Positions 12,007 to 41,805 of a DNA stretch of 64,000 nucleotides are shown one piece after another. The DNA comes from Mantamonas sphyraenae STR306. Its lineage: Eukaryota; Protista; CRuMs. The notes under the pieces are model-generated. The model searched no databases, had not been told where the DNA came from, and was given only the letters and a program-made list of their open reading frames with translations. A program made the translations under genes and the position numbers. The stretch lies in assembly GCA_026936335.1 (NCBI GenBank), contig JAPMXV010000057.1, positions 299,437-363,436 of the forward strand. Reading direction: 5' to 3'. Each line of letters begins with the position of its first letter. Within the stretch, counting starts at the first letter, position 1.

Positions 12007-15000
12007 TTTCTTGCGTAAAATCGCGCGCAATCGTCCCCAACCACTCACCCATCATCCCCTCGCTCAACATACGCTCGCGCGCATATGCCAACCATTGGTT
12101 GCTCTCGCGGAAGCGCATTTTCACCTCTTGCATCATCGTGACGAGCTCCAGCGACACCGAGTGGAACACGTCTGCGTCCGGCGGGGACTCTTTGCCAAAC
12201 CCGCTCACCCGAGCCACTATGTGCTCGCGTGACACAAAGTCCACGTTGATTTCCTTGTCAGCACCTTGACGGATGAACATGTCCACAATGTTTGCAGCCA
12301 GCTTGACACATGCTTGCAATTGCTCGTCTCGTTCGGCGCCGGGCTCCAACGCCTCCACTTCTTTCACGGCCTCCCGGTACTGCTGCATCATCAGGTAACC
12401 CAACAGATTCTCTTCACTGTACTCCATGCGGCAATGCTCCTCAAAGAAGCTGCTGTACAGCCTGTTGTTCAGCATGTCCACAAACGATTCGTGCTCGAGT
12501 TGCGCGCTTGCGGCCCGCTGCTCCTGCGCCCACTGCATCGCCCAAATGCACAGAGGGCGCATGTACGCGATGGATCGGTAGTTGCCGTTGGTATCCCACG
12601 CCTCTGGGGTTTGAAACCAGTAACCCAGGCGCCTGTATACGCTGTCAACAAGTCCGCCCGACGTTTGCCACGCTTCACTCCACAGGCCCTCCTGCATCAT
12701 GCACGCCGCCACGCCGTACGTTGTGCCTGTCCACACCTCGCACGACTGCAACGACGTCATGTCCACCTTTCCGTTTGGACGCATGCCGTTGACGGCGCCC
12801 ATGCAGCCGTTTTCAAAGCCCATCACGTTGTTTGCAAACACCATCTCCAATGCACGCACGGCGCGGTCACGCGGCACGATGCTCGGCAGGCCACACGCAC
12901 CGGCGTACCACTGTCCTGCCAGCTGGTCTGCCATGATGCTGTTATGGTGAGCCTGTTCGCTGCTGTCGTACAAGTAGTAGTGACCGTTCCACAGCGCGGA
13001 TTCGTACCGAGCCGACGCCGACGAAAACACTCCCGCCCAGAACGTCGCGTCCTTCTTTTTGCCCAGTCTCTTGCTTATCCACTCCACAGCTCGAATCGCT
13101 GCCAGCCAAAGACCACCGCTGTAGGCACTGGGTCCCTCCACCGTCCAAGCGTCGTACGTCTGATCAGGGAATCCATCGTTCTCGATCATGCCATCGTTGT
13201 CTCTGTCAAATTGCAGCATATACTTCATCACCTCGCGGATGACGTCCCACATTTCCTGCAGGAACAACAGGTCATTTGTCGCCACGTAGTCGCGAAACAC
13301 CTGCAGCACAAACTTGCAGTTCAGATCCTTCCAGTGGTTCACGTTGTGGATGTTGTAGATGTTGACACTCTGCCACGGGTGTTCGCTCGGTCCGCCCAGA
13401 TCATGTGGGACAGCGCCACGCAGCTTGCGTTCTCCTTCCTCACCGTCGCCCAAGAACTTGCGCCACTCGCTGTCTTCCATCAGCGTTGCCACAGCCACGG
13501 CTCGCTGCAGATTCAGCTCCAGTTTCGGCCACAGCATCAGCAAAGCGTAGCTTGCGTAGAAATGCACGTCGTACGTATTGTACATCAGATATTCCAATCC
13601 TTCCAGGTACACGAATTGCCCCACATCGGTCTCGTCCTCATCCGCACCACTGCTCCCCACACGCGACGTTCCACGACCGCCTCGTGTGCCCAGATCACTC
13701 TGCATCTGCGACTGTGCGTCCCCATGTGCCTTGGCGCCGCTGTGCTTTCCTTGTTGCTCTTCCTCCTCGTCCAGTTCAAACACGTGCACTTCGTCGTCCT
13801 CCTGATCTTCCTCGATTTCCCTCCCCTGTTGCTCCGGCTCCTCCGGCTCCTCCTGTTCCTCTTGTTCCTCTTGTTCCTGCTCCTCTTCGGTTTGCAAGAG
13901 GCTCTCTTCACCATGGCGTTCGTCCCATGCATCTGCATCTCTTTGTCGGCTGTACACAGTGTGTGGGTTAAGGTCCAGGACGTGTGCATGCTCGAGCTCC
14001 ACCTGATCCTCGTTGATCCGCTTCAGTTGGAACTTGCGCTCCTGGTCCGTCTCGTTGTCGTACATGACACACGCGTACAGCTTGCCGACGTCAAGATCAG
14101 CCAAAGAGAAGATCACCTTGCCTGCTTTGGCCTCCTCGTCATTCTGATCCTCATCCACACTCATGCAACTCACCATGATGCCCAACTCGGCCACTTTTCG
14201 AGCATCTGTCAAATAACCCATCACAATGATGACGTTTTCTGTGTGTTGCTTCATGGCATGGGTCATGCGCGTGACTCCCTGCATGCCGTGCTTGCTCATT
14301 TCGTCAAACCAGACGTCCAGTACTTTTCGTCTCGCCTCTTCGTCCACAGCGTGCGCTCTCACCGCATCTTCCACCACAGAAGAGTCTGTCCACACAGCAC
14401 CGCCTGCAGTCAGGTAGTACAGCTCGTTGAAGAGCGCCATGTAGTACCAGTCTGGCGCTCCGGGCGTTCGAGCCACCAGACCGCTCTGCCAGCGTGCAAT
14501 GGTGGTCCTCCACTCGTCGTAGCTGCGCAACGCATCCACGGCAATGTCGTATGCAGCCGTTCCCTCGCGGCCGTAGAACTGCGTGTAGCGCCGGAAGCAC
14601 GCGTTGTCGCCGTGTCCGAAACGCACAAGCGGCATGTCCCACGACAGCGCAAACACGATCTTTCGTTTGCTGTTTGGTGCCATGCGTACCTTGACTGCCA
14701 CCGCACCTCCCAAGGTTTCGTTTGCGTCTGCCACACTCAGCTTGCTGTCATCCTTGGCCTCCCACTTGCTCGTAGAGCGAGGCAAGCCCGACGCGGACGA
14801 GGAGGAGGAGGATGCCGCATCTGCTGTGGATGACGAAGAAGACAACGTGCTGTTGCTTGTCCCTGTGTTCTGACGGCCTATTTTGCGGCCGCCTCCGATT
14901 TTAGGCCTGACAACCGCCTTGTCGCCCGATCCGACGTATTCGTAGGGCAGGACGCCGTCGTCACGAAATGGGTTCCACACATTGGCCCCATTGCCGTTTG

Positions 15001-16441: not shown

Positions 16442-16571
16442 GTCTGTGTGCGCAAGAACGTGTTGTGGCGAGCGGGAAAGCGAATTTTTGTTGCGTTCGC
16501 GTCGCGCAGTGGATGGATGGATGGACACGTGACACGTTGCAAAGGAAGGAACCGTCCAATCTCTTTCCCGT

Positions 16572-18425
16572 CTATTGGTTGCTGGCACAGGAGGGCAGGT
16601 GTTTGCAATAGAGGCCAAAGCGCTTGGTGCGAGTGTACTGCTCAAGGCAGTGCCAGCAAAACTCGTGTTTGCACTGGAGACAGGTCATGTGGATGCACCC
16701 TTCGTTGCGTTCGATATGTGCACTGCAGCCTGGGCAGGCTTTGGTGGTGGCCGCGAGCAGCTCGTCGGTCTTGTCCAGGCCCTCGTCGAGGGCGCGGCGT
16801 TCTTGTGCTGCCTCGTCGCATGTGAGGCCCGGGTGCCACAGTTCGTGGCAGGTGGCACATGCAGACTGCCCACAAGAGGGACACTGCACATAGGTGACGC
16901 CCTCGTCGATGAAGAAGCCCGAGTTGCAGTGCTTGTTGGGACAGTAGACCAGGCCCTGGCCACCGAGGCTTTTGTGAAGGGCAATGGAGGAGTACTGGTC
17001 GTAGAGCTTGGAGGGAACCAACGCACGGACTTCTTGCTCCTGCAGCATAGTCCCACAGGCCATCTGCTGACAGGGAATGTCCGGAGAGTCTGCTACGCGT
17101 CCTCGGATGTGCTCGGTCCAGCAGGAGCGGCAGAAGGAGTGGCCACAGGAGATAGTGTACATGTCATAAGCTGGGACGTCATCGAGACATACCTGGCACT
17201 CATGCTCCTCATCGCCCAGGAGCAGGTTGTTTGCTTCGTCGTCAATCATCTGCAGGACCATGCCCCGTCCGTCGGGGTGGATGTACTGCAGCCAGCCTGC
17301 GACATCGTTTTCCTCAATGGATTGAACCTGTGCCCAACCTGCGAGCAGCTGGCGCACACAGACGAGGGAGTTTGGCTCCAGGATGCGGACCAGGTTGGCG
17401 TCGACATGCGATGGACGATCAAATAGGGACACGACGTCGTCAGAGGCACCATCAGAAGGCTGTACAACGGAAGCAGTGCCTGACTGCTCGTCGATGGCGA
17501 GCGGTGAGTGGAGGACGGCTTGTGAGACAAGAACCCAGCCTCGTTGCGTCAGTGCCCAGTGTTCGTCAGCAAAGGTCTCGAGGACGGGTTCGAGGCAGGC
17601 AGCAGGCAGTTTTGTAGACGTGGCATCCGTATTTGTGGTCGGATAGACGGGGGTGGGCCCCAGGACCCACCGCGGATGCGGTGGGACGGTGGCGTGGTGG
17701 AGCTGGAAGAAGCGTAGTTCGTTGGTTCCCTGGACGTCACGTTCAAGGGCCCAATGCTCGTGGAGCTGCTCATTGACGAGCTGCTGGATTTTGAGCCAGT
17801 TCCCACAGCGGCCGAGGACCACGACCCAGTCTTGGGCCGGGGTCAGGCGGCCGACGATGCGACTGAGGCGAGTCGGGTGGAGGCGGACGCGATGTTGCTT
17901 GCTGTTCTTGAGCTGGGCCACACAGTGCAGCTGTTCGGTTTCGAGGGGAAGGATAAAGACGTCGCCTGAGCTGCTGCGAGCCTTGACCCAGCCCCACACG
18001 GGTTTGCCGTCTGTGCGCTGGCCGCTGTCCATTTGCAACCAGTCGCCCTTGTAGCCCGTGACGAGAATGTTGCGGAGTTTGGTGAGGCGGAACATGATTT
18101 GTGCATCGACGCTGGGCGCGGTGCGCACGCGGTGCTTGTCTGTCTGGATTGAGGCAAAGAATGGAAAGGTGAGCTTGTCGAGGGCGCCCTTGTGGATCAA
18201 CGTGGCCGGCGCCTCGTCGCTAATGGCCTGCTCAGCGTCCAGCTCGTCGTCGTCACTGTCATTGAGAGGTAGCGAAGGGGTGGATGGCAGGGGGTGGCGT
18301 TTGGAGGAGGATGAAGACGACGAGGACGCCGAAGAAGACGACGAATTGGAGGACGTCGAGGAGGAGCCGGATGGGTTGAGACGGCGTTGAAAGGATCGGA
18401 ATATGGAGTTGCTGCGCTGGGACAT
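16572..18425 (-). CDS. RBR (RING1-IBR-RING2) E3 ubiquitin ligase with N-terminal SH3b-like repeats
   Basis: RING1 CQVC..CGHSFCRSC, IBR YCPNKHC..CPSC..CATC..H, RING2 CPGC..IERNEGCIHMTC..CKHEFCWHC. Confidence 0.92.
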   Translation of the reverse strand: MSQRSNSIFRSFQRRLNPSGSSSTSSNSSSSSASSSSSSSSKRHPLPSTPSLPLNDSDDDELDAEQAISDEAPATLIHKGALDKLTFPFFASIQTDKHRVRTAPSVDAQIMFRLTKLRNILVTGYKGDWLQMDSGQRTDGKPVWGWVKARSSSGDVFILPLETEQLHCVAQLKNSKQHRVRLHPTRLSRIVGRLTPAQDWVVVLGRCGNWLKIQQLVNEQLHEHWALERDVQGTNELRFFQLHHATVPPHPRWVLGPTPVYPTTNTDATSTKLPAACLEPVLETFADEHWALTQRGWVLVSQAVLHSPLAIDEQSGTASVVQPSDGASDDVVSLFDRPSHVDANLVRILEPNSLVCVRQLLAGWAQVQSIEENDVAGWLQYIHPDGRGMVLQMIDDEANNLLLGDEEHECQVCLDDVPAYDMYTISCGHSFCRSCWTEHIRGRVADSPDIPCQQMACGTMLQEQEVRALVPSKLYDQYSSIALHKSLGGQGLVYCPNKHCNSGFFIDEGVTYVQCPSCGQSACATCHELWHPGLTCDEAAQERRALDEGLDKTDELLAATTKACPGCSAHIERNEGCIHMTCLQCKHEFCWHCLEQYTRTKRFGLYCKHLPSCASNQ

Positions 18426-27153: not shown

Positions 27154-27495
27154 GTTGTGTTGTGGACTGGCAACATGGGGTGCGTCGCCGCTGCTGTGTG
27201 TTGCGTCACTGACACTCTCGTGGGGGGTGGGGGGATCTCACAGGAAGAAGCAAAGGAACACCAAGCCCGAGTCGGTGTTGCTCGTGACTGCACTGAGCAT
27301 GCTGGCCGTTGTGGGACTGGGTCTGTTCAAGAGCGGCAACAGCGAGAAGAACTGAAGCAGAAAGCAAAGAATGCAACAGATGTGCTCCTTGTTTGGTTGC
27401 CCTCCACTCCACTCCGTTCTTGTGCCCTTTGTTTCTCCGTTGCAACTTTGTGTCGGGGCACGCAGTGCGCAGAGGAAAGAAAAGAAACGCTGGCC

Positions 27496-30400
27496 ATGTC
27501 TGACGACGATTCGGTGCTGCTGCACGCCTTTGTGGGCTTGCTGACAGAGCACATTCCGTTGTATGCATCGATGGCAACGAGTGTGGGCACAGCGGCGGCC
27601 GAGTCCAATTTTCTGCACTGCCTCTTTGCGCTGGAGCACAGTCGGGCGGCAAGCAGCAATCTCGACGCCACTGCAGCGTCGACCCGTGCGCTCTTTCAGA
27701 CGACAGATGGCATCTTGCATGGGATGGATGCGTCGCAACAATTGAAGTTCTTACAGGATGTGGAGCGTTTGGCAACACAGGAGCAGTTTGGCACGTATGT
27801 GGAGGCGTTGAAGGAAACGGTGGAGGCGCGTCAACCGCAACGCATCGACGACCCGCTGTACAACCCGGACCGTGTGGAGGAATTGTTGCGCGAGCGCATG
27901 GGTGACAGTGAAGTAGACGTGGCGGTGCACAAGGCGAGCGAGAAAGGCCAAAGAAAGGACGAGCATGGCAGCGGGGACGAGACAAGTCGAGCGCGCGCGC
28001 CGGATTTTGCGCAGCACGGCCAGTTGACAACGCAGCTGCAGGCTGTGTTTGACACGTTTCGCATGATGGAACACAAAACCATGCGGCCAGAGGAGCTGCA
28101 GCAACAGCTGGTCTTGACGCAGAACAAGGTGAGCGGGCTGGAGGCTTTGCACGGAGTCACGGTGGCCTTGCCCGTGGTGCTGCGCAGACTGGACGCAAGC
28201 GTGGGCGACCTGCCGGCTGTGTATCTGCTGCACACAGGTGTCAAGTTGCTCGCAGACAGGCTGCTGCTGCAGGGACATGGTCCACGCGCGCGGGAGGCGT
28301 ACGATGCGTTTCGCGAGCGTGTCAGCACACAGGCACACAAGAGCAACACTGGGTATGATCCGATGCTCCTACTTGAAGAGGTTGTCAAATTGTCCCACGT
28401 GCAGCTGGAGAAGCCGTACGCAGCCCCCACACATGTGTACGCGGCGTGGCGCGAGTACAGCACGGTGTTGGCATCGCACGACGCGTTGCATGACCTTCAC
28501 CGCAGCCGTCTGGACACCATGTTGCCGTCGCTGCTGCCGTTCTGGATGAACTACAGACAGAGCTTGAGTGCGTTGCGCACAAATGTTGCCGAGCGGCTGG
28601 GGCAGGACACGAGCAACTTGGCCAAGGACGTGCATACATGGATGTTGCAACTGCTGGCCACGCTGGTGGCTGACGCAGAGTTGGTGTTGGGCCCTCCGCC
28701 GTGTGCGTTTTCCCTGCTCGCGTTTGGCGACCTCAGCCGAGGGTTTGTCACTCCATACTCCGCGGTACAGCTTGCGGTGCTGGTGGATCAGCGCCACGAG
28801 TACTTTGACGCCCTGGTACGCTTGCTGCACTTTAAATTTCTGTGTTTCGACGAGACGCACGAGAGCAGGCCGGGACTAAGACTGCACTTTACCCACAACC
28901 CGGTGACCATGCCCGCGCTGCTGGACACGCCGGAAGGCATGGCGTCGTACTTTTATGGAGACGGGGCGCTGAAGCTGATCAAGTCGGCGATGAGCGGGCG
29001 CAGGGCGAACAAGGGCGAGAGATCAGGCACAGCACGGGGGCTGGTGTCTGACACACCACGACTTGACCAAGTGCGCGGCACACGGTGGCACTTTGGCGAT
29101 TCGCAGTTCCACTTTGACACGTTTGCCAACATGTACTCGTCACGTAGCATGGCGCAGTATTCGACCTCTGAAGTGGTGGAGGACCTGAGTGCCACTTTGG
29201 ACAACCTCCTGGGCGAATCCAAGGCCATGGGCCGGATCCAGGCACCGGCGGGAGAAGAGATCCATGCAAACACGTTTGCCACGGTGGCCCTGTCTCTGTT
29301 GGACGCGGTCGTCATGTACAGTCACAGTGTGTCCACGTCGTCGTCGTCATCATCATCGGCGCCGGCAGCAGAGGGAGCAGAGGGGGCAGACGCTGCGGGC
29401 GGTCTTTTTGCGCAGCTGCACGCACACATTCACACGCATCTGGTTGCGCAAGACGTGGTGCGTCAGATGCCGCTGCACCAGTCCCTGGCGCTGGAGTGCT
29501 TCTCATCACTGGTGCAGGAGTATGAATCGGTGCGGCACAGCAGCGTGGGCGCGCGACTCAATCTTTGGCAAGAGTGCATCGAGCCCGTGCACAGACTCCT
29601 GGTGGCCATGTTGCTCTATTTCAACATGCCTCTGGGCAGCGTGGGACACAATTTCAATGCTTTGTGCAAGCGAGCCATCCTGGATTGGTCGTTTGGGGAC
29701 ATGGCTATGCAGCTCGCAGGCCGGTTGCACGTACTGCGCCTCTCGGCCTCCATCCAGGCGGGTGTGGCGTGTGACGACATGCAACTGAAAGACGAGAGCT
29801 CATCGTCGTCGTCGTCGTCGTCGTCATCGTCGTCGTCCATGTGGCTGAAGGACATGCAGGGCACGACAGACACGTCGACGCACGTGCGGCATCGAGTGAC
29901 CAGCGGACAGCGCAAGGTCGTGCTGGCATGGTACTGGTCTGTGTTGCGTGCCATGTTCAATGGCTGTGTGCGAGAGTTGGAGTCGTTCAAAGAGTATGCG
30001 CGGCTGCAAAACGCGCTGCCAGACACAGAGAGCAAGCTGACGTCGGATACGAGTCACCTGTTTGACTGGAGGGCGTACCACCCCATCGACGAGGACTTTT
30101 TGCACAACTTGGTGTATCGGCAGGCGTCGAGTGCGTTCAAGTACAGCAACAGTGTGCAGCTTCTGGAATCGATCGAAGGGGTGTTGTACTGCCTCAGCCT
30201 CAAGGCCGACCACTCGTACCGCGCAGTAGTGGCGAACCATCGCGCATACTACGTACAACTGCCTGACCAGTTCCGCAAGGTGTACCTGAGCAAGATGGAG
30301 GAGATTGAACACGAAGACGTGATGACGCTGATGCGCGAGAATCTGGCCAGCCACCCGGATCCAGGAGGAGAACGTGCGGATGCCCAAGAGCGACAAAGAG

Positions 30401-33400
30401 TGTGGTCCGATACGCTTCAGTCGCTGCATCAGGCAGATACAGGCGGTATGGATGCGATGACGGTGTTTGTGGACTCGACCAGTTTGGGAGCCCTGCGGCT
30501 GTCGGTGGATTTTGTGCAATGTCTGCTGGACCACGGCGTGCTGGAGAGCACAGGACTGATGTCCACAGCTGTGGAGAGGTTGGCACATACGTCGTCACAG
30601 GGCGCACACGTGAATCACCTTGTGTACGGAGGCCAGTGTCTGATGCTGCTGGCGGATCCGGAGCTTCCTGCAAGCGAGCACGCATACGCTCGCTTGCATC
30701 ACTACATCGTGGGTGAACCGTGCACACAGTCAGACCTCTCTCGCTGGCAATGCGGGCGCCACAGGTACACGGTGCTTGTGGCGCACAGGGAAGGAGGCAT
30801 CTCGCTGGCGACTCACCTTCAACTGCATCCGAACGACATGCTCGAGGATGTACACAGCAAGCACTTTTCGCAGCAGGTACTCATGGCCCTGCTGTGTACG
30901 CCAGAGTACGACGGACCACACAACTTTTTCATGCAAAAGGTCCCTGGCTATCCGAACCCTCTGGAGAAGGCGCGCACGCTGCACAAGATCGAGTATGCAC
31001 GATGCATGCTGCCGGACATGGATCCGCGTGATGGAAAGGCACCCATCTTTCAGCGGAACTTTTTGTTTTGCATGGACGCTATGCTGGGCAAGGTGGACCA
31101 GGAGGTGGTGCAAGATTTCCTTGTGCTACATCCGGTGCAGGTGCTGCGGAACTGGCTCCACGATGTGGTGGACCACACCATGCACTACACACAAGTGGGT
31201 GCGGATGAACGTGCGGTGCACCTGCAAGGTGTCCAGCTTGTGTATCACCGCATTGCGCAGCTGCAAGATCTGCTGCACGACAACCCGCAGCGAACACTCG
31301 TCGATCTGCTCGTCTCCATGCATCCAGAGACCGGTGTTTACTATCGCCGCCTGCTGAATTTCCACAAGACACCCACCGCTCGGTACAAGCAGGTCATCCA
31401 GGCGTTTGCGAGTCCACGAGGCTTGGACGACACCTCGGCGGCATCCTCGTCGTCATCGTCGTCGACTGCCCTGCTGTCGCCCACGTTTTGCAGGCACCAA
31501 TACCACACGGACGCAAAGGCCGCACTGGCCAACTTGACGTCGATCAGCTCGGACGACAACACGATCATGGAAGCGCGCAAGGCACTTTTGCAGGGAAAGG
31601 GCACGCGTTTCATCCACCTGCCGGACAACCATTGTCGGGAAAGAGTGATCGATTCGATCGACTTTGATACGCTGGCGTCGTACGACAACTTGAGCAAGGG
31701 CAGCCATGAAGAGGGAGGAGGCGACGCCGCGCAAGAGAGCAAGACGAAGCACGCGTTGCAGCAGTCCATCTTGCACACGGTGATTGTGTCCAAGATGACG
31801 TTTGAGAATCTGTTTGTGCGCAACAGCTCTGCGCTGACCGACTCGGTGCTTCTGTCGATCCTGCTGAACTGTGACACAATTGCATACAACGCGTTGACAC
31901 GCATGGACCTGTCTGGAAGTACGCGCATCACAGACACAAGCGTAACACACATCTCGAAGCATTGCCGTGCGTTGGAAGAACTGGTTCTGTGCCGTGTGCA
32001 CACGCTGGTGCACTTGTGTGCGCCGTCGCAACTCGCTGGAGCGGTGTCGCTTACCATGCCGCGTCTGCGGCACCTGGACGTCAGCCAGTGTTCGCAACTC
32101 GTTTCGTTCCATATGGAGTGTCCGTTTATGGAGACACTGGTGGCCACGCAGTGCGAGCGGCTACAACAGCCCGTGGTGAGTACGCAGCACGTGATGGAAG
32201 CCGATTTCACAGGCGCGGTGCAGCTGAGCGATGCAGCCATGGCCGAGTACATTGCAAGGGCTCCGAACACGCGTTCGCTGATTCTCAGCGGCTGCTCCGA
32301 GGTGACGCAACGCAGCTACCGCGAGCGATGTCCTGCGTTGTGCGCATTTGTTGTGCCCGACTCGCCTGCCCTGTTCCGCGCGGTGGAAGATTGCCTGTTC
32401 CATCACGACATTACCAAGCTGGCGATCAACGGGGTCAACTTGGCAGATACCGCAGGGTTGGCTGTGTGCCATGCGTTTGAGCGCAACCGAGAAGTCGACG
32501 AGCTTTCACTGCGCTCGGACCTGCTGGGGGACAAAGTGGCCCATACGTTGGCAGCAGCCATCCGGTACCGTCGCGTGAACTATGCCAAGCACTTGACGGC
32601 TTTGGACGTGAGCTACAACGCGCTGACGGCGCAAGGCTTGAACGAGCTCATGGAAGCGTGCACGTCGATGACGGGCTTCCACTCGCTGATGGTGCGTGAC
32701 AACAAGGTAAACGCAGACAGCTTGGGTGTGCTGGCGTCGATGCTTGCACAGACGGCGTCGTTGACGCGCGTGGACCTGAGCCACAACCGATTGGGACGCA
32801 AGAGTGCATTCGACCTGGAGCGGCTGCTGGAAGGGGACAACAACTTGACATGGCTGGATTTGAGCCACAATGACGTGGGATTGGCCGGTGCCAAGGCCAT
32901 CTGTGCGGCACTGCAGAACAACCGCAAGCTGCAGTCGCTGCACCTGGACACAAACGACATGGGCGCAGAGGCCGGGATGCACCTCGGGCGACTGCTGGAC
33001 AAGAACGAGACGCTGACGGAACTGACAGTGGCATCCAACAGGTTGGGAGACACGGGGGTGGCCGATCTGTGCAAGGGGGTGCACGGAAGCATGACCCTGG
33101 TCAACCTGGATCTAAGCAGCAACGATTTGACGGAAGACGGGTCGGTGCACTTGATGCACGCAGTGCGGCACAACACAAGCTTGCAGGAGCTGAATGTGGG
33201 CTGGAACGGGCTCAGTGCACGCACAAACGAAGAGGTGTACCGGCATGTGTCGTTCAACGTGCGCATCCACAAGCTTTTGGCAGCAGATGAGAAGCTGACA
33301 GACGTGGACATGCAGGAATGGGGGATCGACGATCACTATTGCGGCGTCCTTGCGCGCGTGTTGCCGGCAAGTCCGCATGTGCGCTCGCTGAACCTGTCGC

Positions 33401-36400
33401 ACAACAACATTACGCACAAGGGTGCCATGAACATGGTGGAGGCAGTGCAGCGCACAACATGGCTGGAATCGCTGGATCTGTCGCACAACTACATTGGCAA
33501 CGAAGCGGTGTTTGCATTTACAGAAGTGCTGCGGCTCAACCGGCGCCTGAAGTACCTTAACGTCGACCATCAGCTGTGGGCAAAGCCGACGGTGTTGGTA
33601 AGCAGTGAACTGGGCCAAGACACCACACGTTCGTTGGCGGACGAGACACACGGCAGCACAACGTCGAGCTTTGCCATGGTGAGCGCGTTCCTGGACGAGG
33701 ACAACGAGGTGGCGGGCACGGTGACGGCGCGCAGAGTGAGTGGTGAGCAGGCGGGTGATGACGAGTTGACAGGACAACCTCCGGTGACTGTGGAAAGCAT
33801 CTACGAGGCGATCCGAGAGGCAGCGAGTGGGGAGCAGGCTGGCGAGGCGTTTGTGCTGAAATTGGACAAGAGGCGCATGGACCTGTTTGCCATCGAGTAC
33901 CTGTGCACGGAGATCCTGACACAGTCGGCATGTCCGTTGACCGGGCTGAGCATGCGCCACAATGGGATTGGACATGCGGGTGGTTTGGCGATTGCCGGGG
34001 CGATGGCAAGCAACCAATCGCTGCGGAAGCTGCAACTGGGTTGGAACCACTTTGACGACACGATTGCAGATGAAATGGGCCGTGCGTTGGGTGAGTGTCA
34101 CGTGCTGGAAGAGGTGGAATTGACGTGCACGAATCTGATGAGTGCGGGTGTACAGGCGCTGATGCGCGGCATGGAGAGGAACAAGAGTGTGCGCACCCTG
34201 CATCTGGGCCAAAATTCCATCGGTGCCGAGGCAGGACCGGCCATTGGACGGATGCTGCAGGAGAACGACACGCTGAGGCACTTGACGCTGCAAGGAAACG
34301 AGCTTGGTGACGAGGGGGTGGACGTGATTGCAGATGCGCTGCGGGTGAACGAAACGCTGGGACTGCTGGATTTGGGTGGGAACGGGGTGGGAGACGCCGG
34401 GGCGCAGGCGATGGCGAGCCACCTGCGTGAGAACGCAGTGCTTCACACGCTCCTGTTGGACGACAACGACATAGGCGACAAAGGCGCGCGTGAGCTGTTT
34501 TACACGCTGGAGGGCTGCACCAACATGCAAGAGCTGTCGATCAACACAAACCGCGTGAACAACGGCGAGATTGCACAAGACATCCGCGCGTTTTGCAAGA
34601 TGCACACGTTTCTGATGAGGCTGGAGGCTCAGGAGGAAGGGCTTCACGCGTTGCATCTGACCAACTACGCACTGGGAGACGTGGGCTGCACACAGGTGGC
34701 GAACGCGCTGCGTCGCAACAAACACCTGCGCAGCTTGGAACTGAACATCAACCAGATCGGAGAGGAGGGGGCGCTGCACCTTGCGCATGCATTGGAATTC
34801 AACAACACCCTCACGAGTCTGGATGTGAGCGACAACCTGCTGGAGGACAGTGGAGTGAGCCACCTGGCGGATGCACTGAAACGCAATGAGGCACTTACTG
34901 CGCTGAACCTGACGTTGAACAGCTTTGGGGTGGACGGAGTGGTTGCCATGGCATCTGCGCTGAGACATAACAGCGCGTTGCAGGTGCTGGAGCTGAGCCA
35001 CAATTTCGTGGGGCCTGTGGGATGCGACCAACTGTACAAAAGCATGTGCGCAAACGAGACGCTGACGGAGCTTGGGTTGGCCAATGCACACGTGGGCGAC
35101 GATGGCTTGGCACTGCTGGTGCGCATGTTGCCTGCAAACGGGACGTTGGTGTCACTGGATTTGAGCGGGAACCAACTTACGAGCGAAGGGAGCGAGGATC
35201 TGGCGCAAGGCATCCTGCACTGCAAGGGACTGATGCGGCTGCTGTTGGGCAAGAACTCGCTGATGGACAGCGGAGCAGGGCGTGTGTTTCGTGCGCTGCG
35301 GTTCAACACGACGCTGACGTCGCTGGATCTGGCGCACAACGTGATTGGTACGGAGGCGCTGCACGAGTTTGAGGCGACGCTGGAGTCGAACACGACGCTG
35401 GTAAGCCTGGGTCTGGAAGGAAACCAGGTGGACATGTCGCTGCAAGCGACGCTGATGGACAGGCTGGAACTCAACCGCAGCGTGACGCGTCTCATTGTGA
35501 ACGACACGGAGCTGCGTGAGCTGACAATCGACCTTTATCTGCACGGGGTCGGGGCCAAGATGCTCGCAGAGGGGCTGTACGATAACCAGGCGTTGCGATC
35601 GCTACGACTGGAAGGCAATTCGATGGACGCGGACGACTTGATGCTCGTGTGTGTGAGTCTACAAGACAACCAGACATTGGAGCGGCTGGAGGTGCTGAAG
35701 AACCCGTTGGGAGGAAGTGGCGGAGAGCACATGGGCCAGCTGCTGAGCCATTTGGCATGTGGGGTGCGGCACGTGAGCCTGATCGAGTGCGAATTGGGCG
35801 ACGCAGGAGTGGCAGCAATTGGCGAGGCGCTGGGCACAAACCAATCGCTGGGTGAGCTGGTGCTGTGTGGCAACGGGTTTGGAGTGACGGGCAGCGAAAT
35901 GATGGGTTGGGGATTGGAACGCAACGTCGGGCTGCAATCGCTGAACGTGAGCCAGAACCCACTGGGAGGGGCAGGGGTGGATGCATTGGCTGAGGCGCTT
36001 GCAGGAAACGACACGCTGACAAAGCTGGACATCAGCTACTGCCACCTGGATGTGTTTGCAGGGCGGTCGGTTGCAAACTTGTTGCGGCACGGTTCGCTGG
36101 AATGGCTGGAGCTGAGATGGAACAAGTTGGGGGACCACGGAGTGGAATTGGTGGCGGGTGGCCTTGTAGAAAACCGACGTCTGAGCTACCTGGGGTTGAA
36201 CTCGTGTGGGTTTGGGCCGGACGGGTGCACAGTGCTCGCGCGGTGCCTGAAGGAGAACCACGGGTTGGAGGAGCTGGATGTGAGCAAAAACGAAATTGGA
36301 TCGCGAGGAATGGGCTACCTGGGCATGGCGCTTCGGGACAACGTTTGTCTGCGCGCACTGAACGTAAACTGGTGCGCACTGGGCGACCAGGGGGCGATGC

Positions 36401-36612
36401 AGATGGCCAAGCTGCTGAAATGCAATGGAGGGTTGGAGAGCGTGCGCATGGAGTGGAACGACATCGGGGATGTGGGTGGCGAGGCGTTGATCCGGATGAT
36501 CAAGAGCAATCAGACCGTGCGTGAGCTGGCCGTGTTGATTGGCAACCGGATGGGAAACGAGGTGCACGGCGAGTTGCGGCGCATTGCAGAGGCACGAGCG
36601 GGTTTGGCATGA
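27496..36612 (+). CDS. Giant (~3040 aa) protein: DUF294/GlnD-like nucleotidyltransferase fold + PI3/4-kinase-like domain + very long LRR array
   Basis: LGPPPCAFSLLAFGDLSRGFVTPYS at ~28690. DPELPASEHA..FSQQVLMALLCTPE..NFLFCMDAM at ~30650-31090. FBXL-type LRRs, then dozens of 28-aa RI-type LRRs (LxxLxLxxNxIGxxG) from ~31800 to the end. Confidence 0.8.
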   Translation: MSDDDSVLLHAFVGLLTEHIPLYASMATSVGTAAAESNFLHCLFALEHSRAASSNLDATAASTRALFQTTDGILHGMDASQQLKFLQDVERLATQEQFGTYVEALKETVEARQPQRIDDPLYNPDRVEELLRERMGDSEVDVAVHKASEKGQRKDEHGSGDETSRARAPDFAQHGQLTTQLQAVFDTFRMMEHKTMRPEELQQQLVLTQNKVSGLEALHGVTVALPVVLRRLDASVGDLPAVYLLHTGVKLLADRLLLQGHGPRAREAYDAFRERVSTQAHKSNTGYDPMLLLEEVVKLSHVQLEKPYAAPTHVYAAWREYSTVLASHDALHDLHRSRLDTMLPSLLPFWMNYRQSLSALRTNVAERLGQDTSNLAKDVHTWMLQLLATLVADAELVLGPPPCAFSLLAFGDLSRGFVTPYSAVQLAVLVDQRHEYFDALVRLLHFKFLCFDETHESRPGLRLHFTHNPVTMPALLDTPEGMASYFYGDGALKLIKSAMSGRRANKGERSGTARGLVSDTPRLDQVRGTRWHFGDSQFHFDTFANMYSSRSMAQYSTSEVVEDLSATLDNLLGESKAMGRIQAPAGEEIHANTFATVALSLLDAVVMYSHSVSTSSSSSSSAPAAEGAEGADAAGGLFAQLHAHIHTHLVAQDVVRQMPLHQSLALECFSSLVQEYESVRHSSVGARLNLWQECIEPVHRLLVAMLLYFNMPLGSVGHNFNALCKRAILDWSFGDMAMQLAGRLHVLRLSASIQAGVACDDMQLKDESSSSSSSSSSSSSSMWLKDMQGTTDTSTHVRHRVTSGQRKVVLAWYWSVLRAMFNGCVRELESFKEYARLQNALPDTESKLTSDTSHLFDWRAYHPIDEDFLHNLVYRQASSAFKYSNSVQLLESIEGVLYCLSLKADHSYRAVVANHRAYYVQLPDQFRKVYLSKMEEIEHEDVMTLMRENLASHPDPGGERADAQERQRVWSDTLQSLHQADTGGMDAMTVFVDSTSLGALRLSVDFVQCLLDHGVLESTGLMSTAVERLAHTSSQGAHVNHLVYGGQCLMLLADPELPASEHAYARLHHYIVGEPCTQSDLSRWQCGRHRYTVLVAHREGGISLATHLQLHPNDMLEDVHSKHFSQQVLMALLCTPEYDGPHNFFMQKVPGYPNPLEKARTLHKIEYARCMLPDMDPRDGKAPIFQRNFLFCMDAMLGKVDQEVVQDFLVLHPVQVLRNWLHDVVDHTMHYTQVGADERAVHLQGVQLVYHRIAQLQDLLHDNPQRTLVDLLVSMHPETGVYYRRLLNFHKTPTARYKQVIQAFASPRGLDDTSAASSSSSSSTALLSPTFCRHQYHTDAKAALANLTSISSDDNTIMEARKALLQGKGTRFIHLPDNHCRERVIDSIDFDTLASYDNLSKGSHEEGGGDAAQESKTKHALQQSILHTVIVSKMTFENLFVRNSSALTDSVLLSILLNCDTIAYNALTRMDLSGSTRITDTSVTHISKHCRALEELVLCRVHTLVHLCAPSQLAGAVSLTMPRLRHLDVSQCSQLVSFHMECPFMETLVATQCERLQQPVVSTQHVMEADFTGAVQLSDAAMAEYIARAPNTRSLILSGCSEVTQRSYRERCPALCAFVVPDSPALFRAVEDCLFHHDITKLAINGVNLADTAGLAVCHAFERNREVDELSLRSDLLGDKVAHTLAAAIRYRRVNYAKHLTALDVSYNALTAQGLNELMEACTSMTGFHSLMVRDNKVNADSLGVLASMLAQTASLTRVDLSHNRLGRKSAFDLERLLEGDNNLTWLDLSHNDVGLAGAKAICAALQNNRKLQSLHLDTNDMGAEAGMHLGRLLDKNETLTELTVASNRLGDTGVADLCKGVHGSMTLVNLDLSSNDLTEDGSVHLMHAVRHNTSLQELNVGWNGLSARTNEEVYRHVSFNVRIHKLLAADEKLTDVDMQEWGIDDHYCGVLARVLPASPHVRSLNLSHNNITHKGAMNMVEAVQRTTWLESLDLSHNYIGNEAVFAFTEVLRLNRRLKYLNVDHQLWAKPTVLVSSELGQDTTRSLADETHGSTTSSFAMVSAFLDEDNEVAGTVTARRVSGEQAGDDELTGQPPVTVESIYEAIREAASGEQAGEAFVLKLDKRRMDLFAIEYLCTEILTQSACPLTGLSMRHNGIGHAGGLAIAGAMASNQSLRKLQLGWNHFDDTIADEMGRALGECHVLEEVELTCTNLMSAGVQALMRGMERNKSVRTLHLGQNSIGAEAGPAIGRMLQENDTLRHLTLQGNELGDEGVDVIADALRVNETLGLLDLGGNGVGDAGAQAMASHLRENAVLHTLLLDDNDIGDKGARELFYTLEGCTNMQELSINTNRVNNGEIAQDIRAFCKMHTFLMRLEAQEEGLHALHLTNYALGDVGCTQVANALRRNKHLRSLELNINQIGEEGALHLAHALEFNNTLTSLDVSDNLLEDSGVSHLADALKRNEALTALNLTLNSFGVDGVVAMASALRHNSALQVLELSHNFVGPVGCDQLYKSMCANETLTELGLANAHVGDDGLALLVRMLPANGTLVSLDLSGNQLTSEGSEDLAQGILHCKGLMRLLLGKNSLMDSGAGRVFRALRFNTTLTSLDLAHNVIGTEALHEFEATLESNTTLVSLGLEGNQVDMSLQATLMDRLELNRSVTRLIVNDTELRELTIDLYLHGVGAKMLAEGLYDNQALRSLRLEGNSMDADDLMLVCVSLQDNQTLERLEVLKNPLGGSGGEHMGQLLSHLACGVRHVSLIECELGDAGVAAIGEALGTNQSLGELVLCGNGFGVTGSEMMGWGLERNVGLQSLNVSQNPLGGAGVDALAEALAGNDTLTKLDISYCHLDVFAGRSVANLLRHGSLEWLELRWNKLGDHGVELVAGGLVENRRLSYLGLNSCGFGPDGCTVLARCLKENHGLEELDVSKNEIGSRGMGYLGMALRDNVCLRALNVNWCALGDQGAMQMAKLLKCNGGLESVRMEWNDIGDVGGEALIRMIKSNQTVRELAVLIGNRMGNEVHGELRRIAEARAGLA

Positions 36613-36639
36613 ATGAAATGAAGTGCTTCCATTGGAGCG

Positions 36640-39600
36640 TTATCCGTGCAAACGGCGTGTGTCGACGTCCAGAGTGGTGTGCTGCTGTTGGAGCTGCACG
36701 AGCTCGTCTGTGTCCATGCTGTCAGAGCAAAGGCGTCGGAGGCCAGGAAAGGTGTGCTTGACCGTGTCAAAGATGCTGGACGTGGGCAACAAGGGGCAAT
36801 CGAGGACGTTGAGACATTGGAGGGCATCGGAGGGAGCGAGTCCTTGAAGGTCCTCCAGGTTGTGACTGCTTTGGAGATCGAGCTCGACAAGGGTGGGGAG
36901 GACGGCGTTGATGGAGAGGAGGTGGGCAGCGGTGATCCAGGGGCAGCGGCGGATGCGAAGGGTGCTCAGGGAGGTGAATGGGAGGAGGAGAGTTTCGAGG
37001 TGCTGAGGACTGGCTTCCGGGACGGCGTCGAGGTGAATTTCGCGGATGGCTTGGGGTGCGTCGAAGCGAGCAAAGTCTTGGGCGTAGTCGCAGGGCCATG
37101 CAATGAGGCAGATGGAGGTGAGGAGGGTGGAGTGGGTGGCTGCGTGTGCGAGGGAGATGTTGGCGTCTCCTTGGCCGAGCTTTTCGTTATCGCTTCCGCG
37201 TGGCAGGGCCACGGTAAGGTGTCTGAGGTTGGGGAAAGCAGTGGGCAGGATATCGATCATTTCCTGCTGCATGGATTGCACCTGCACGAGCTGCAGTGAG
37301 GTCAGGGTGGGCTCGCACGCGTTGGCGAGGAGCTTGAGGCCGTCTGCGGTGACGCCGGAGCAGTTTGTGAGCTTGAGGGAAGTCAAACTGGTGAGGTGTT
37401 CACCAAGAACCTTCCAATCGCCCTCTTGGATGTCAGTGAAGCCGGCGAGCTCGAGTTGGCGGAGCTGGTGGCAGTTTGTGCCCAGACCCTGGAAACCAGG
37501 CAGACCGAGCTCGCTCTGACTGGCTTCAGATGACGATGAGGATGAGGAGGAGGAGGAGGATGAGGAGGAAGAGGAGACGCTGTTTGTGCGTTTGCGGTCA
37601 ACGGCGTCTGGAGCACAGTAGACGAGGCGTGTGAGCGAGGCAGCATGTTGAGCAATGATGGCGGCCATGCGTTTGGTGGACATGGAGGCGCAATTGACAA
37701 ACTCGAGGGAGTCGATGTTGTTGCAGCGCTGGAGGAGGTCGTCGAGGGAACGCTCGTTGATGAGGGGGCAATTGTGGAGATGGAGGGAGCGGAGGGCAGA
37801 GTAGCGATAGGCGATGGACAGGACGCCCGAGTTGCCGAGGTTGGTACAGTCTTGCATCCAGAGGTGCTGAACAGAGACAGCCTCGCTGCCAAGAAGGACT
37901 TCAAGGTGGCCGTCGACAATACGTGGCCCTCGCACGCGGAGGGACTCGACGTTGGTGGCGACGGAGGAGAGGGAAAGGATCATGCGGTGGCTGAGGTCGT
38001 GGGTGTGCACGCTGAGGTCGAGATGTTTCCACACGTTTGCGTCGTTGAGGACGTGCTTCCAGCGCGAGCAGACACGGCGGCATTTGAAACGATCGGGAAG
38101 GGAAAGGTGTGAAAAGATGCGGCGGAGGGTGGACTTGTCGAGGTCTTGCATGGTGGTGCGGTGAATCATGGAGCGGTCCTGGTCGATGCGCTGCTCGAGA
38201 GCAAAGCGCTGCTGGCGTTGAGCGACGCTGCGCCAGGACTGTAGCTGGTGGACCTCTGTCACGGTGCGGAGGAGAGCAGCGGGCTTTCGGGGATCCTCTT
38301 TGGTGGCGTACATCCATCCGTGGAGGTGTTGGTCGCGGCAAAGGTCGTCGAGCTGGGTGGAGGCAAAGGCGTGCGTGGGAACGTCGGCCTTGTTGGCGAC
38401 CGCAAAAACGTAGACAGAGTCGAGGCTCCAGGAGTCGATTTCGGTCTTGCAGGAGGCAGCTTGGTGGAGGGTGGAGGGCTGGTCGAGGGCAAGAAGCAGG
38501 AGGACGACGTCGGGAGGCGGGGTACCGATGGGCATGCGGTCTGCGAAGGATGAGGAGGCAGTCTTGAAGGTGCGCTTGTTGGTGGTCATGAGATGCATGG
38601 CGACGGAGTAGCGTGTGCCGTTGGTCCAGGTGACGGCGCGGGCGTAGGTGTCGCCGACGAGGAGGAACTCGGTGCCCTTGGAAAAGGTCTGCTGGGCGAG
38701 CGCGGCCATGAGGGTGTACTTGCCCGTGTTGGCAGGCCCCATGATGAGCATGTTCATGTCCATTTCGTCGACCATAGAGACAGTGTCGGTGAGATAGATC
38801 TGGCCGTACATGGCGATACGTTGCGGGAGAATGGAGCGCATGGCGTCTGTGATGGCCATGGCCTCGCTGTCGACAAGGTGGTTCGAGCGCAGGTCCAGGA
38901 CCTCAATTCGAGTGTCTGGGTTGTTGCAGAGGGCGGCCACGAGGATGTGTGCTGAACGGTGGTCAAAGGCGTTGCCTTGGAGGTGGAGGCGCTGCAGGGT
39001 GGCGTTGCGGGAAAGGGCGTCTGCGAGAGCGGTGGCACCCTCTGTGCCAAAGGAGTTGTTGCGGAGAAAGAGGTGGCGGAGGCTTGTGTTGTCCTTGAGC
39101 ATGGCGCTGATGCGCTGGGCGGTCTGCGGGCCGAGACCGTTTGCAGAGAGGTCGAGAGAGGTGATGTGTGTGTTGTCGTGGAGCATGCCAGCAATAATGC
39201 AGGCGGCGTCGTCGCCGAGGCGGAGGGAGCCTGCAGACATAAAGGGGGCGGGGGCTTGGGAGTGGCCGTCATTGTCGTCATCGTGTTGGTCGTCGTGGTC
39301 GTCGTGGCGCTGGGCAACGGGGCTCAGCCAGTGCATGAGGCGAGCGTGTTTGCGGACAAAGGCCTGGACGTCGTAGCGAGAAATCCAAGGGTGCTGTTGG
39401 ATGTCCGAGTGGCGGACGACGTCGTGGCAGCCGTCGAGGAGGAGGACGGCAAACTGGGCGTCCATCTGGGCAAATCGTTGGAGGCGAGGGCTGGTGAGCT
39501 GTGGGCAGTTTGACAAGTCGACGGTCATGGCTTGGTTCTGGCTGAAGGCGAGAGGTTTGACGAGGGATTCGCAGTTGGAGAGGTCAAGGAAAGAGAGCTG

Positions 39601-41805
39601 TGGGGCGTCGATGCTGACCGTGGTAAGGTTTTCGCAGCGAGAGAGGTCGAGGACGGAGAGGCTGGGAAAATCGAGGTAGCCGATGTCCATGAGTGGAGAG
39701 ACAAGGGAGATGCCTGGGCAGGAGGAGAGGTTGAGGCGTTCGAGGAGTGGGCAATTTGTACAGATCCAGCGGACGGAGGCGTCTGTGATCTGTGGGCATG
39801 CCTCGAGGTCGAGGTAGACAATGGAGGGGGAGGACTGAAGGACGCTTTGGAGGCGAGAGTCTGAGAGTGTGGAGCAGTGCGGTGCGCGGAGGGTGGCGAG
39901 GGAGCGGGAGTAGAGCATGTCGATGACATCGTCCTGGAGGGCGGAGTCTGCAAAGAAGCGGGACTGGGAGAGGATGTGGTTTGCAACAAACTCGACGTGG
40001 TAGTCGATTTCCAGTTCGCCGAGGCGGCGGACAGCGCGGTCAAGGATGATACGGTCGTCTGGGCGTTGGTCAAGGTCGATGGAATCGATGGAGGAGACGA
40101 GCTCGTGGACGGCAATGTACTCGTGGCCAGCTTGCTCGAGGGTGACGCGGAGAAAGTCAAAGTTTGTGGCGTGGGCGTCGAGGATCTGGTCGCGGGAGCT
40201 GTTTGGATAGACGGCGGCGACGATGGCGTCAAAGTCGAGGCGAGTGTGAAGGAGGTAGTGCTGGATGTCGGAGTTTTGTGTGATGGGAGCATCGGGGAGG
40301 ATCTTAAAGTCCTGCTCGGCGGACGGGTGGAGCTTGAGGTGTGTTGGGGCAAAGGCTTGGCGCCATTGGATGAGCGGGTTGATGTTTGGGCGGAGGTATT
40401 GGGCGTAGAAGGAGCCGAGGAAGGGCTCGACGTTTTTGAGAACGTCGAGGTGTGTGATCTGTGGGGAGTCGTCGCCGAGGGTTTGGAAGAGGTGCTTGAG
40501 GCGGGTGAGGCGAATGTAGAGATCCTGGATGGAGCCGCGCGGGAGAAGAAGGGAGGCGAGGGTGGACTCTTCGCGGGGCCTGCTGATGCCGAGGAAGGAG
40601 GTGAAGGAGGAGGCGAGGTTGGAGGCGTTGTACATGTTTGTGAGGTGGTCTGGAGTGGCGACGTTGTTGAGGCGCTGGTTGTACATCTGGAGGGCGTCGA
40701 GCCATTGGGAGAGAGGTTTGGCAATGTCCATGTCTTGGACGGCGCGGACGAGGGATGGGTGGATGGGGTGGAGCATGTCTGGGAGGCAGAAGAGCGCGTT
40801 CTTGACCTGCGGGAGGAGCTTGGATCCGCTGCGTGTGAAGGGGGCGACAAAGATGCGATCTGCGTCGACGAGGCAGAGAGAGTAGGGCTGAGGATCGTTT
40901 TCAGAGGCTGGGCTGTGGACAAGGACGAAATCGTCTGTTTTGGCGCTCTCTGGGTGGAGGAGGAGGGTGAGGAGGAACATGTTTGAGAAGGAGAGCGGGT
41001 TGATGGAGGAGGATGAGGTCGGGGAGAGAGGAGGAGGAGAGGAGGAAGAGGAAGAAGAGGAAGAAGAGGAGGAGGGCGAGGCGTCTGTGGCGGGGGGGCT
41101 GAGGTAGGGGTGTTGGGGAGGAAGGGAAAAGAGAAAGTGGGTGAGGTCCGGGCCGTGGATGGCCGGCGTGACGTGGACGGGTACGCGTTCACCGTCGGCG
41201 AGGGAAAGGATCCAGAGGTCGGCCTCGGGGACGAGAGAAGGGGAGGCGTTGGGGAAGAGGAGGTGGGCGAGCGAGTGTGCGGCTTGGTGGAGAGCAGGAA
41301 ACTCGGGCCAGAACTTGAGAAAGAGGGTGAGGTCGTACTGCATAAGGTGGACAGGGACGACCATATGGCGGCCGAGAGTGATACGATAGGGGTCTACGGA
41401 CGGGGAAGGGTTGTCTGAGGAGGATGAAGAGGTCTTGACGGTGTCGAGGAGGGAGGAAAAGGCGTTGCCGACGCCGGTGCCGATGGCGCGGAAGTTGAGC
41501 AGGGAGGAGTCTTGGGCGTCTGCATCGGCGGCAGCCTTGGGTACTTGAGAGCGGGAGACAAAGTGGTAGCCGTCGCTGCGTTGGCGGAGGGCGCCAAAGT
41601 GGACGAGTTGGGCGAGAATGTCTGCGTGGAGGGCGCGCTGGGTGCTGGGTGTGGAGGAGGAGAAGAAGGAGGAGATGGAAGAGGAGGAGGAGGAGGAGGA
41701 GGATTCGATGTCGCCATCGAGGAGAAGGGAGGTGACGAGGAGAGGGGAGGCGGTGTCGTCGGTGGCGAGAGGGAGGAGACGCTTGAGGTTTGCGGAGGAG
41801 TGCAT
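36640..41805 (-). CDS. Multidomain protein: PI3/4-kinase-like + LRR + Ras-like GTPase + F-box + LRR
   Basis: LFLKFWPEFPAL..FSNMFLLTLLLHPE..LVDAD..KNALFCLPDM. P-loop GPANTGK and G4 NKAD. F-box LDKSTLRRIFSHLSLPDRFKCRRVCSRW. Confidence 0.82.
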   Translation of the reverse strand: MHSSANLKRLLPLATDDTASPLLVTSLLLDGDIESSSSSSSSSISSFFSSSTPSTQRALHADILAQLVHFGALRQRSDGYHFVSRSQVPKAAADADAQDSSLLNFRAIGTGVGNAFSSLLDTVKTSSSSSDNPSPSVDPYRITLGRHMVVPVHLMQYDLTLFLKFWPEFPALHQAAHSLAHLLFPNASPSLVPEADLWILSLADGERVPVHVTPAIHGPDLTHFLFSLPPQHPYLSPPATDASPSSSSSSSSSSSSPPPLSPTSSSSINPLSFSNMFLLTLLLHPESAKTDDFVLVHSPASENDPQPYSLCLVDADRIFVAPFTRSGSKLLPQVKNALFCLPDMLHPIHPSLVRAVQDMDIAKPLSQWLDALQMYNQRLNNVATPDHLTNMYNASNLASSFTSFLGISRPREESTLASLLLPRGSIQDLYIRLTRLKHLFQTLGDDSPQITHLDVLKNVEPFLGSFYAQYLRPNINPLIQWRQAFAPTHLKLHPSAEQDFKILPDAPITQNSDIQHYLLHTRLDFDAIVAAVYPNSSRDQILDAHATNFDFLRVTLEQAGHEYIAVHELVSSIDSIDLDQRPDDRIILDRAVRRLGELEIDYHVEFVANHILSQSRFFADSALQDDVIDMLYSRSLATLRAPHCSTLSDSRLQSVLQSSPSIVYLDLEACPQITDASVRWICTNCPLLERLNLSSCPGISLVSPLMDIGYLDFPSLSVLDLSRCENLTTVSIDAPQLSFLDLSNCESLVKPLAFSQNQAMTVDLSNCPQLTSPRLQRFAQMDAQFAVLLLDGCHDVVRHSDIQQHPWISRYDVQAFVRKHARLMHWLSPVAQRHDDHDDQHDDDNDGHSQAPAPFMSAGSLRLGDDAACIIAGMLHDNTHITSLDLSANGLGPQTAQRISAMLKDNTSLRHLFLRNNSFGTEGATALADALSRNATLQRLHLQGNAFDHRSAHILVAALCNNPDTRIEVLDLRSNHLVDSEAMAITDAMRSILPQRIAMYGQIYLTDTVSMVDEMDMNMLIMGPANTGKYTLMAALAQQTFSKGTEFLLVGDTYARAVTWTNGTRYSVAMHLMTTNKRTFKTASSSFADRMPIGTPPPDVVLLLLALDQPSTLHQAASCKTEIDSWSLDSVYVFAVANKADVPTHAFASTQLDDLCRDQHLHGWMYATKEDPRKPAALLRTVTEVHQLQSWRSVAQRQQRFALEQRIDQDRSMIHRTTMQDLDKSTLRRIFSHLSLPDRFKCRRVCSRWKHVLNDANVWKHLDLSVHTHDLSHRMILSLSSVATNVESLRVRGPRIVDGHLEVLLGSEAVSVQHLWMQDCTNLGNSGVLSIAYRYSALRSLHLHNCPLINERSLDDLLQRCNNIDSLEFVNCASMSTKRMAAIIAQHAASLTRLVYCAPDAVDRKRTNSVSSSSSSSSSSSSSSSSEASQSELGLPGFQGLGTNCHQLRQLELAGFTDIQEGDWKVLGEHLTSLTSLKLTNCSGVTADGLKLLANACEPTLTSLQLVQVQSMQQEMIDILPTAFPNLRHLTVALPRGSDNEKLGQGDANISLAHAATHSTLLTSICLIAWPCDYAQDFARFDAPQAIREIHLDAVPEASPQHLETLLLPFTSLSTLRIRRCPWITAAHLLSINAVLPTLVELDLQSSHNLEDLQGLAPSDALQCLNVLDCPLLPTSSIFDTVKHTFPGLRRLCSDSMDTDELVQLQQQHTTLDVDTRRLHG

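Follow-up and report, generated by a model that had tools for sequence, protein, structure and literature searches.

A convergent pair of giant leucine-rich repeat genes in Mantamonas sphyraenae shares a predicted type II PI4-kinase-like module with proteins of protist-associated bacteria

A 64,000-nucleotide stretch of the genome of the protist Mantamonas sphyraenae STR306 (contig JAPMXV010000057.1, positions 299,437 to 363,436 of the forward strand; hereafter referred to as the window) contains two giant genes, A and B, whose products carry leucine-rich repeats (LRRs). Gene A (27496..36612, + strand) is a single open reading frame (ORF) of 3038 amino acids (aa), counted from the ATG at 27496 chosen in an earlier reading of the DNA, hereafter the original prediction; the frame itself is open over 27157..36612 (+). 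Gene B (36640..41805, − strand) is a single ORF of 1721 aa. The two intronless genes are convergent, tail to tail, with a spacer of 27 bp (36613..36639) between their stop codons, as originally described. Since the spacer is so short, the 3′ ends of the A and B transcripts presumably overlap. The A/B junction is unbroken in contigs of 3–8 kb from three separate DNA samples. A 4-bp indel (listed at 36609-36612) was noticed at the spacer: one copy of a duplicated ‘atga’ is missing in two of the three samples, and the stop codon of A is unaffected.

The original prediction described A and B as diverged paralogs with a common module, which was supported by pairwise comparison. BLASTP of A against B gave a single, significant colinear alignment of 749 columns (E 1e-23). 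It takes in the domain with the motifs, a stretch of helices, the cysteine-containing FBXL-type LRRs and the earliest RI-type repeats; for the domain with the motifs by itself, the E value was 1e-5. All of the motifs quoted in that earlier reading were found in both proteins in identical order. The helical stretch, taken there for a separate linker, is present in both proteins, but it was modelled confidently inside the C-lobe and therefore belongs to the kinase-like domain. The order of the module, a kinase-like domain with its helical end followed by FBXL-type and then RI-type LRRs, is thus the same in A and B. Pfam detected LRRs alone in A (LRR_6, 240.8 bits), and LRRs together with an F-box at aa 1221-1264, above cut-off, in B.

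The kinase-like domain occupies aa 1028-1303 of A (30577..31404, +) and aa 143-487 of B (40345..41379, −), where it contains a poly-Ser insert. It was not recognized by Pfam or NCBIfam, and sequence searches of PDB chains with the single domains and with a 50-sequence profile returned nothing relevant. A and B did not match the PI3/PI4-kinase family PF00454, which was matched by two of 50 family members at an E value of 0.055. AlphaFold models built from the family alignment had pLDDT 87.8 and pTM 0.88 for A (aa 1021-1310) and pLDDT 83.8 and pTM 0.84 for B (aa 135-490); the two models share largely one alignment and therefore represent the family fold rather than two independent results. The first match in Foldseek was type II phosphatidylinositol (PI) 4-kinase alpha (probability 1.0), and the nearest shapes in ESM Atlas were plant PI4K-gamma proteins (TM 0.52-0.55). 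Hypothetical proteins of bacteria came up in a language-model look-up, in which PI3_PI4_kinase, LepB_N, Sca4 and HipA-like were the closest clusters with a name. The modelling thus supports the earlier kinase-fold proposal, the first domain of the module being predicted to fold like members of the PI3/PI4-kinase superfamily, with type II PI4K as the nearest.

Conservation of the catalytic positions was scored over 46 foreign homologs, none of them from the host genome, and was compared with A, B and two further paralogs encoded in the same genome, C and D (see below). The β3 Lys (46/46 homologs) is Leu in A and is kept in B, C and D. The αC Glu (44/46) is present in A and C and replaced by His in B and Asn in D. 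At the catalytic-loop Asp, invariant in all 46 homologs, A has Tyr and B has Ser, with Asp in C and D; the loop Lys (42/46) is Gly in A and Lys in the other three, and the loop Asn (45/46) is Asp in B and Asn in A, C and D. The EDGKPDN stretch reads EYDGPHN in A. The D-N-D motif, whose three positions are conserved in 46, 46 and 44 of the homologs, has become EYA in A, DAD in B, DNE in C and DLE in D. The residue set of an active kinase (β3 Lys, loop Asp, Lys and Asn, and the D-N-D motif) is therefore incomplete in both A and B, in agreement with the earlier suggestion that catalytic positions are altered in both copies. Judged by these residues, A is almost certainly and B probably a pseudokinase, and the catalytic set of C looks intact.

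A word search revealed one bacterial giant protein, P0001, with the motifs KEFPELPG, VEDAKPDN and IDND, in which two Ras domains and Lipase_3 precede the kinase-like domain and LRRs. P0001 (locus L001, 3001-9765, a bacterial metagenome contig) is 2254 aa long and also carries an OTU-like GDGDCFFHA motif, an architecture resembling that of large effectors. Word-index searches with the B domain, with residues 130-640 of B and with residues 195-1000 of D gave one weak match each or none; such searches are too insensitive for proteins this divergent, so these blanks say little. At E<=1e-3 an exhaustive profile search returned 1310 cluster representatives, of which 238 reached E<=1e-30. Nearly all family members are 1000-4200 aa long with the kinase-like domain placed centrally. 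The consensus of the 46 foreign members includes GRH.V, LY.K..PELPG.E.AV, NPEDGKPDNYI, IDNDHAFVP, QVK.ILYCLD.M, WL, LY.K..RLQ and TH..LL...P.LG..Y. The PExPG/PEDGKPDN/IDND set, which the original prediction attributed to large effector-like proteins of amoeba-associated intracellular bacteria and to some protists, is thus the consensus of this bacterial family. A profile made from the 46 foreign sequences alone detected A (4.5e-37), B (4.4e-52) and two other genes of the same genome (3.3e-32 and 3.3e-54).

All named or context-checked members are bacterial and protist-associated. They were found in Neochlamydia sp. AcF65 and AcF84 and in Candidatus Jidaibacter acanthamoeba; a scan of genome contigs with 10 closer sequences added Candidatus Paracaedibacter symbiosus and metagenome-assembled genomes of Paracaedibacteraceae, Holosporales, Dependentiae, Chlamydiae and Gammaproteobacteria, often at 3-7 loci per genome. 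Within bacterial genomes, too, family members are clustered. The neighbors on five checked contigs were bacterial genes or insertion sequence (IS) elements. A scan of viral contigs revealed no relatives and no giant-virus copy. Among 29 full-length members, Pfam detected LRR_6 in 14, ankyrin repeats in 10 and Sel1 in four, with DUF294, OTU, Ras, Lipase_3 and Tox-ODYAM1 each in one or two, and their consensus has the same module order as A and B. In many of these 29 homologs another kinase-like domain, more divergent than the main one, lies N-terminal to it, and ankyrin repeats often separate the two. Motif-string and keyword searches of the literature found no description of the kinase-like domain.

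Outside the kinase-like domain, A contains at aa 335-485 (28498..28950, +) the remnant of a DUF294-type nucleotidyltransferase (NTase), which BLASTP relates to the bacterial family members P0065 (E 3e-12) and P0056 (E 8e-7). The region has no Pfam match, and its homology is visible solely through these DUF294-bearing homologs, to whose NTases it is nevertheless demonstrably related in sequence. Its motif reads GDLSR..YSAVQ compared to GSLSR..YSDLE in the homologs, so that the acidic catalytic residues are missing. The FBXL-type, cysteine-containing LRRs of A (aa ~1430-1620; 31783..32355, +) are colinear with P0056 and with the Pfam-detected FBXL-like LRRs of B. They are followed by RI-type LRRs with a 28-aa period (aa ~1640-3010; 32413..36525, +), arranged in about five blocks; these repeats account for the LRR_6 score of A, and by pattern count at least 29 of them fit a strict pattern.

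B has its FBXL-type LRRs at aa ~625-800 (39406..39933, −; Pfam PF23622 and LRR_4), aligned to the bacterial family member P0042, and a short RI-type block at aa ~860-990 (38836..39228, −) detected by Pfam as LRR_6 and by BLASTP against the RI repeats of A. A divergent P-loop, Ras-like region follows at aa ~1015-1190 (38236..38763, −) with the motifs GPANTGKY, DTYA and NKAD. Judged against the Ras patterns GxxxxGK[ST] (G1), DxxG (G3) and NKxD (G4), its G1 and G3 are non-canonical. The Pfam Ras match is sub-threshold (E 0.002, 18.2 bits compared to a cut-off of 21.6), and BLAST detected no match to the Ras domains of family members, so the GTPase label is tentative. The F-box (aa 1221-1264; 38014..38145, −) scored 34.6 bits with PF12937 (cut-off 24.3) and 31.6 bits with PF00646 (cut-off 20.5). 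Further FBXL-type LRRs come after it (aa ~1290-1700; 36706..37938, −), as detected by Pfam (PF24758, PF25019) and by pattern count. An F-box followed by LRRs is the arrangement of an F-box protein, and from its sequence B is predicted to act as a substrate receptor of an SCF ubiquitin ligase.

Comparison with bacterial members showed that NTase and Ras domains are not peculiar to the host. A is colinear over 817 columns (E 1e-48), in addition to the NTase segment, with P0056, which consists of DUF294, DUF294_C, the kinase-like domain and LRRs. B aligns over 640 columns (E 2e-29) with P0042, a protein with DUF294, the kinase-like domain, LRRs and Ras, encoded between flanking IS elements. In P0065 the order is DUF294, kinase-like domain, LRR and Ras. 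The occurrence of DUF294 NTase and Ras among bacterial members indicates that they are typical of the family rather than integrated decoys. The GTPase-like region of B itself was not linkable to the family Ras domains, and for its F-box the one parallel is a weak, sub-threshold F-box-like match in P0005 (22.1 bits compared to a cut-off of 24.3).

The host genome (25.06 Mb, 78 contigs) contains four family members only. C (1850 aa, contig C33) and D (1245 aa, contig C51) are unlinked singletons, each with the same module. C (locus L008, 3374-8926 (+)) retains the full catalytic motif set, with LDGKPDN and IDNE, and D (locus L009, 5662-9399 (−)), with PEDDKAEN and IDLE, is a minimal version of the architecture. 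Comparison of the N-terminal parts of A and C revealed no similarity. Directly upstream of C lies an ORF of 864 aa (L008, 802-3396 (+)) made up of numerous repeats of parallel beta-helix-like form (H..IWV.., NRIHHS..), which on visual inspection look similar to those of the CASH/FBXO11 type.

In BLAST, the A and B modules scored 73 bits against each other, ranking about 65th-69th among about 150 family proteins; P0056 scored 138-153 bits against the modules of A and B, which thus resemble a bacterial homolog more than each other. On this rank and their long branches, A and B are old, deeply diverged paralogs. A tree of the kind proposed originally joined B with C (SH-aLRT 92) and A with D (SH-aLRT 84), both being long-branch joins. 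The host copies were neither united nor separated by it: one clade of all four was not rejected (p-AU 0.42), nor was an A+B sister clade (p-AU 0.25).

We favor, with moderate confidence in the explanation as a whole, the view that A and B belong to a four-gene host family of anciently diverged, bacteria-derived, non-catalytic scaffolds. The family rests on a single conserved module, in which a type II PI4-kinase-like domain (K..PELPG, NPEDGKPDN, IDNDHAF, C..M, WL and C-terminal helices) is followed by FBXL-type and then RI-type LRRs. In bacteria its members occur in several copies, joined to ankyrin, Sel1, OTU, lipase, DUF294 nucleotidyltransferase or Ras domains, and resemble secreted effectors. 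The host copies would derive from an old transfer out of protist-associated bacteria, which seems somewhat the likelier course, and would later have taken on host composition. With a nucleotidyltransferase and a kinase that have lost the conserved catalytic residues in A, and a kinase and a GTPase-like region that lack several of them in B, both proteins may now be non-catalytic binding scaffolds. In that case A, with its two dead enzyme folds, would serve as an outsized binding platform of RI-type LRRs. B would be a substrate receptor of the F-box/LRR kind for SCF; its kinase-like fold would have been retained to bind a ligand or membrane or for regulation, and its P-loop part would serve binding or regulation. 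The adjacency of A and B may be left over from an old local duplication or from arrival together, rather than the mark of an obligate sensor/helper pair.

Several points weigh against this explanation. LRR, F-box, Ras and PI4KII are components typical of eukaryotes, so the module could have arisen in a eukaryote; the proteins of the library are not labelled by taxon, and eukaryotic ones may be among the 1310 matches; the tree is unrooted, and its four host sequences sit on branches of 1.7-2.5 compared to a median of 0.68. As the A+B clade was not rejected, local duplication followed by functional coupling is also conceivable, and the loss of catalysis in A and B is read from sequence. The reverse direction of transfer, in which protists made the module, intracellular bacteria captured and expanded it as effectors and A-D are native, appears unlikely but conceivable because of the missing taxonomy, the missing root and the mostly eukaryote-typical parts. 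The type II PI4K family, to which the nearest fold belongs, is not known from outside the eukaryotes. Among the eukaryote-like domains classically seen in symbiont effectors are RI- and FBXL-type LRRs, F-box, Ras and ankyrin (PMC4209131). The host-like composition of the host copies and the unrejected single clade would also fit a eukaryotic origin. On the other hand, no close eukaryotic relative appeared among the best exhaustive-search matches or in word searches, insensitive as these are, of 5.8 billion proteins; all five checked contexts are bacterial and no giant-virus copies were found. In addition, the DUF294 NTase, retained by A, is part of the shared architecture, and DUF294 is mainly a bacterial NTase family. 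Acquisition from symbionts, as originally suggested, is plausible. That B, and perhaps A, is still active as an atypical kinase with non-canonical catalytic residues is improbable. The fold is predicted confidently, and B retains Lys at β3 and in the loop as well as both Asp residues of the D-N-D motif; yet A has Tyr and B has Ser at the invariant loop Asp, and Tyr and Ala, respectively, at the invariant Asn of the motif, the β3 Lys is missing in A and the branches are long.

The original prediction likened A and B to paired nucleotide-binding LRR receptors (NLRs) with integrated domains. On this view the two would act together as sensor and helper immune receptors, baiting effectors of symbionts or pathogens with a dead NTase, GTPase and F-box. 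In its favor, the paralogs are adjacent, and both proteins have large LRR arrays and degenerate enzyme domains; since the family is otherwise effector-like in intracellular bacteria, a dead host copy could in principle be a mimic or decoy. However, Pfam scans of A and B, whole and in pieces, detected no STAND NTPase (NB-ARC or NACHT). The genes are tail to tail and therefore do not share a promoter as a head-to-head pair would, and the other two paralogs are unlinked. The divergence between A and B is deep, as their mutual rank attests, and NTase and Ras occur in bacterial members and are thus not host-specific integrations. The analogy therefore fails in the features examined, and we consider such a receptor pair quite improbable. 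The related notion that domesticated dead effector copies, possibly acting as an A/B pair, mimic the bacterial originals or act as decoys, competing with them or sensing them, with B feeding SCF ubiquitination, is speculative and in our opinion improbable; if true, it would represent a non-NLR, effector-derived immune module in a protist. Finally, an assembly artefact or bacterial contaminant DNA might be suspected, the kinase-like and LRR family being otherwise bacterial. This is very unlikely, to the point of being negligible, because Pfam identified eukaryotic neighbors on the same contig (GH116/GBA2, Vps18, protein O-mannosyltransferase, an M1 aminopeptidase, an RBR ligase and a RhoGEF-PH-FYVE protein), the GC content at third codon positions (0.74 in A and 0.78 in B) and the codon usage are the same as in these window neighbors, and the junction was recovered in all three DNA samples. 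The poly-Ser tracts, which resemble those of C and D, also argue against contamination. Gene content, with the protein O-mannosyltransferase and FGD-like RhoGEF genes among the pointers, would by itself hint, as a guess, at a protist of opisthokont type.

The family is distinct from the known systems with which it was compared. Type II PI4Ks (PI4KII-alpha/beta, plant PI4K-gamma; PF00454) are not matched at the sequence level, as the PF00454 and PDB searches described above indicate; the family domain differs from them by its fusion to LRRs, and A and B lack the family-conserved catalytic residues. Likeness to the Legionella lipid-kinase effectors MavQ and LepB is much weaker than to PI4KII, with one of 50 members matching LepB_N (PF18640) at an E value of 0.052; these effectors lack the LRR module and form a separate family. 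Parachlamydiaceae have expanded F-box/LRR/TPR/DUF294 effector families, NEX1, NEX2 and PEX, with multi-copy birth-and-death evolution (Domman et al. 2014, PMC4209131). Neochlamydia, F-box, RI-type LRR and DUF294 are common to both, but no kinase-like domain is described for NEX1, NEX2 or PEX, and those families are bacterial whereas four copies are found here in a eukaryotic chromosome set. ROCO/LRRK2 proteins are likewise giant proteins with LRRs, a Ras-like GTPase and a kinase, and B, P0065 and P0042 have all three kinds; however, a COR domain was not found, the kinase, which lies N-terminal of the LRRs, resembles PI4K instead of a TKL protein kinase, and the GTPase of B is sub-threshold. 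Paired plant NLRs with integrated decoys (RGA4/RGA5, RRS1/RPS4) also consist of adjacent diverged paralogs with LRRs and extra domains, but A and B have no NB-ARC, are tail to tail rather than head to head, and carry extras typical of their family.

The 1310 cluster representatives of a type II PI4K-like domain joined to LRRs constitute a large family outside curated models, which appears to be a major class of effectors in bacteria associated with protists (Chlamydiae, Rickettsiales/Holosporales, Dependentiae and Gammaproteobacteria). The four eukaryotic chromosomal copies, from the apparently intact C to the multiply inactivated A, provide a natural series that bears on the role of the kinase-like fold, on the movement of effector-type genes between bacteria and hosts and on the reuse of pseudoenzymes. 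The attractive paired NLR-like reading is corrected here as unsupported.

Other features of the window were also noted. Over ~50 kb (14000-64000) the + strand has a positive GC skew (0.1-0.5) regardless of gene orientation; before ~14 kb the skew is negative. The GH116/GBA2-type glucosylceramidase gene (11996-16645, −) encodes an unusual fusion with a C-terminal RGS domain (Pfam DUF608 518.9 bits, Glyco_hydr_116N 269.8 bits and RGS 37 bits). At 9817-12048 (−), Pfam detected a UBX domain and LRRs in one protein.

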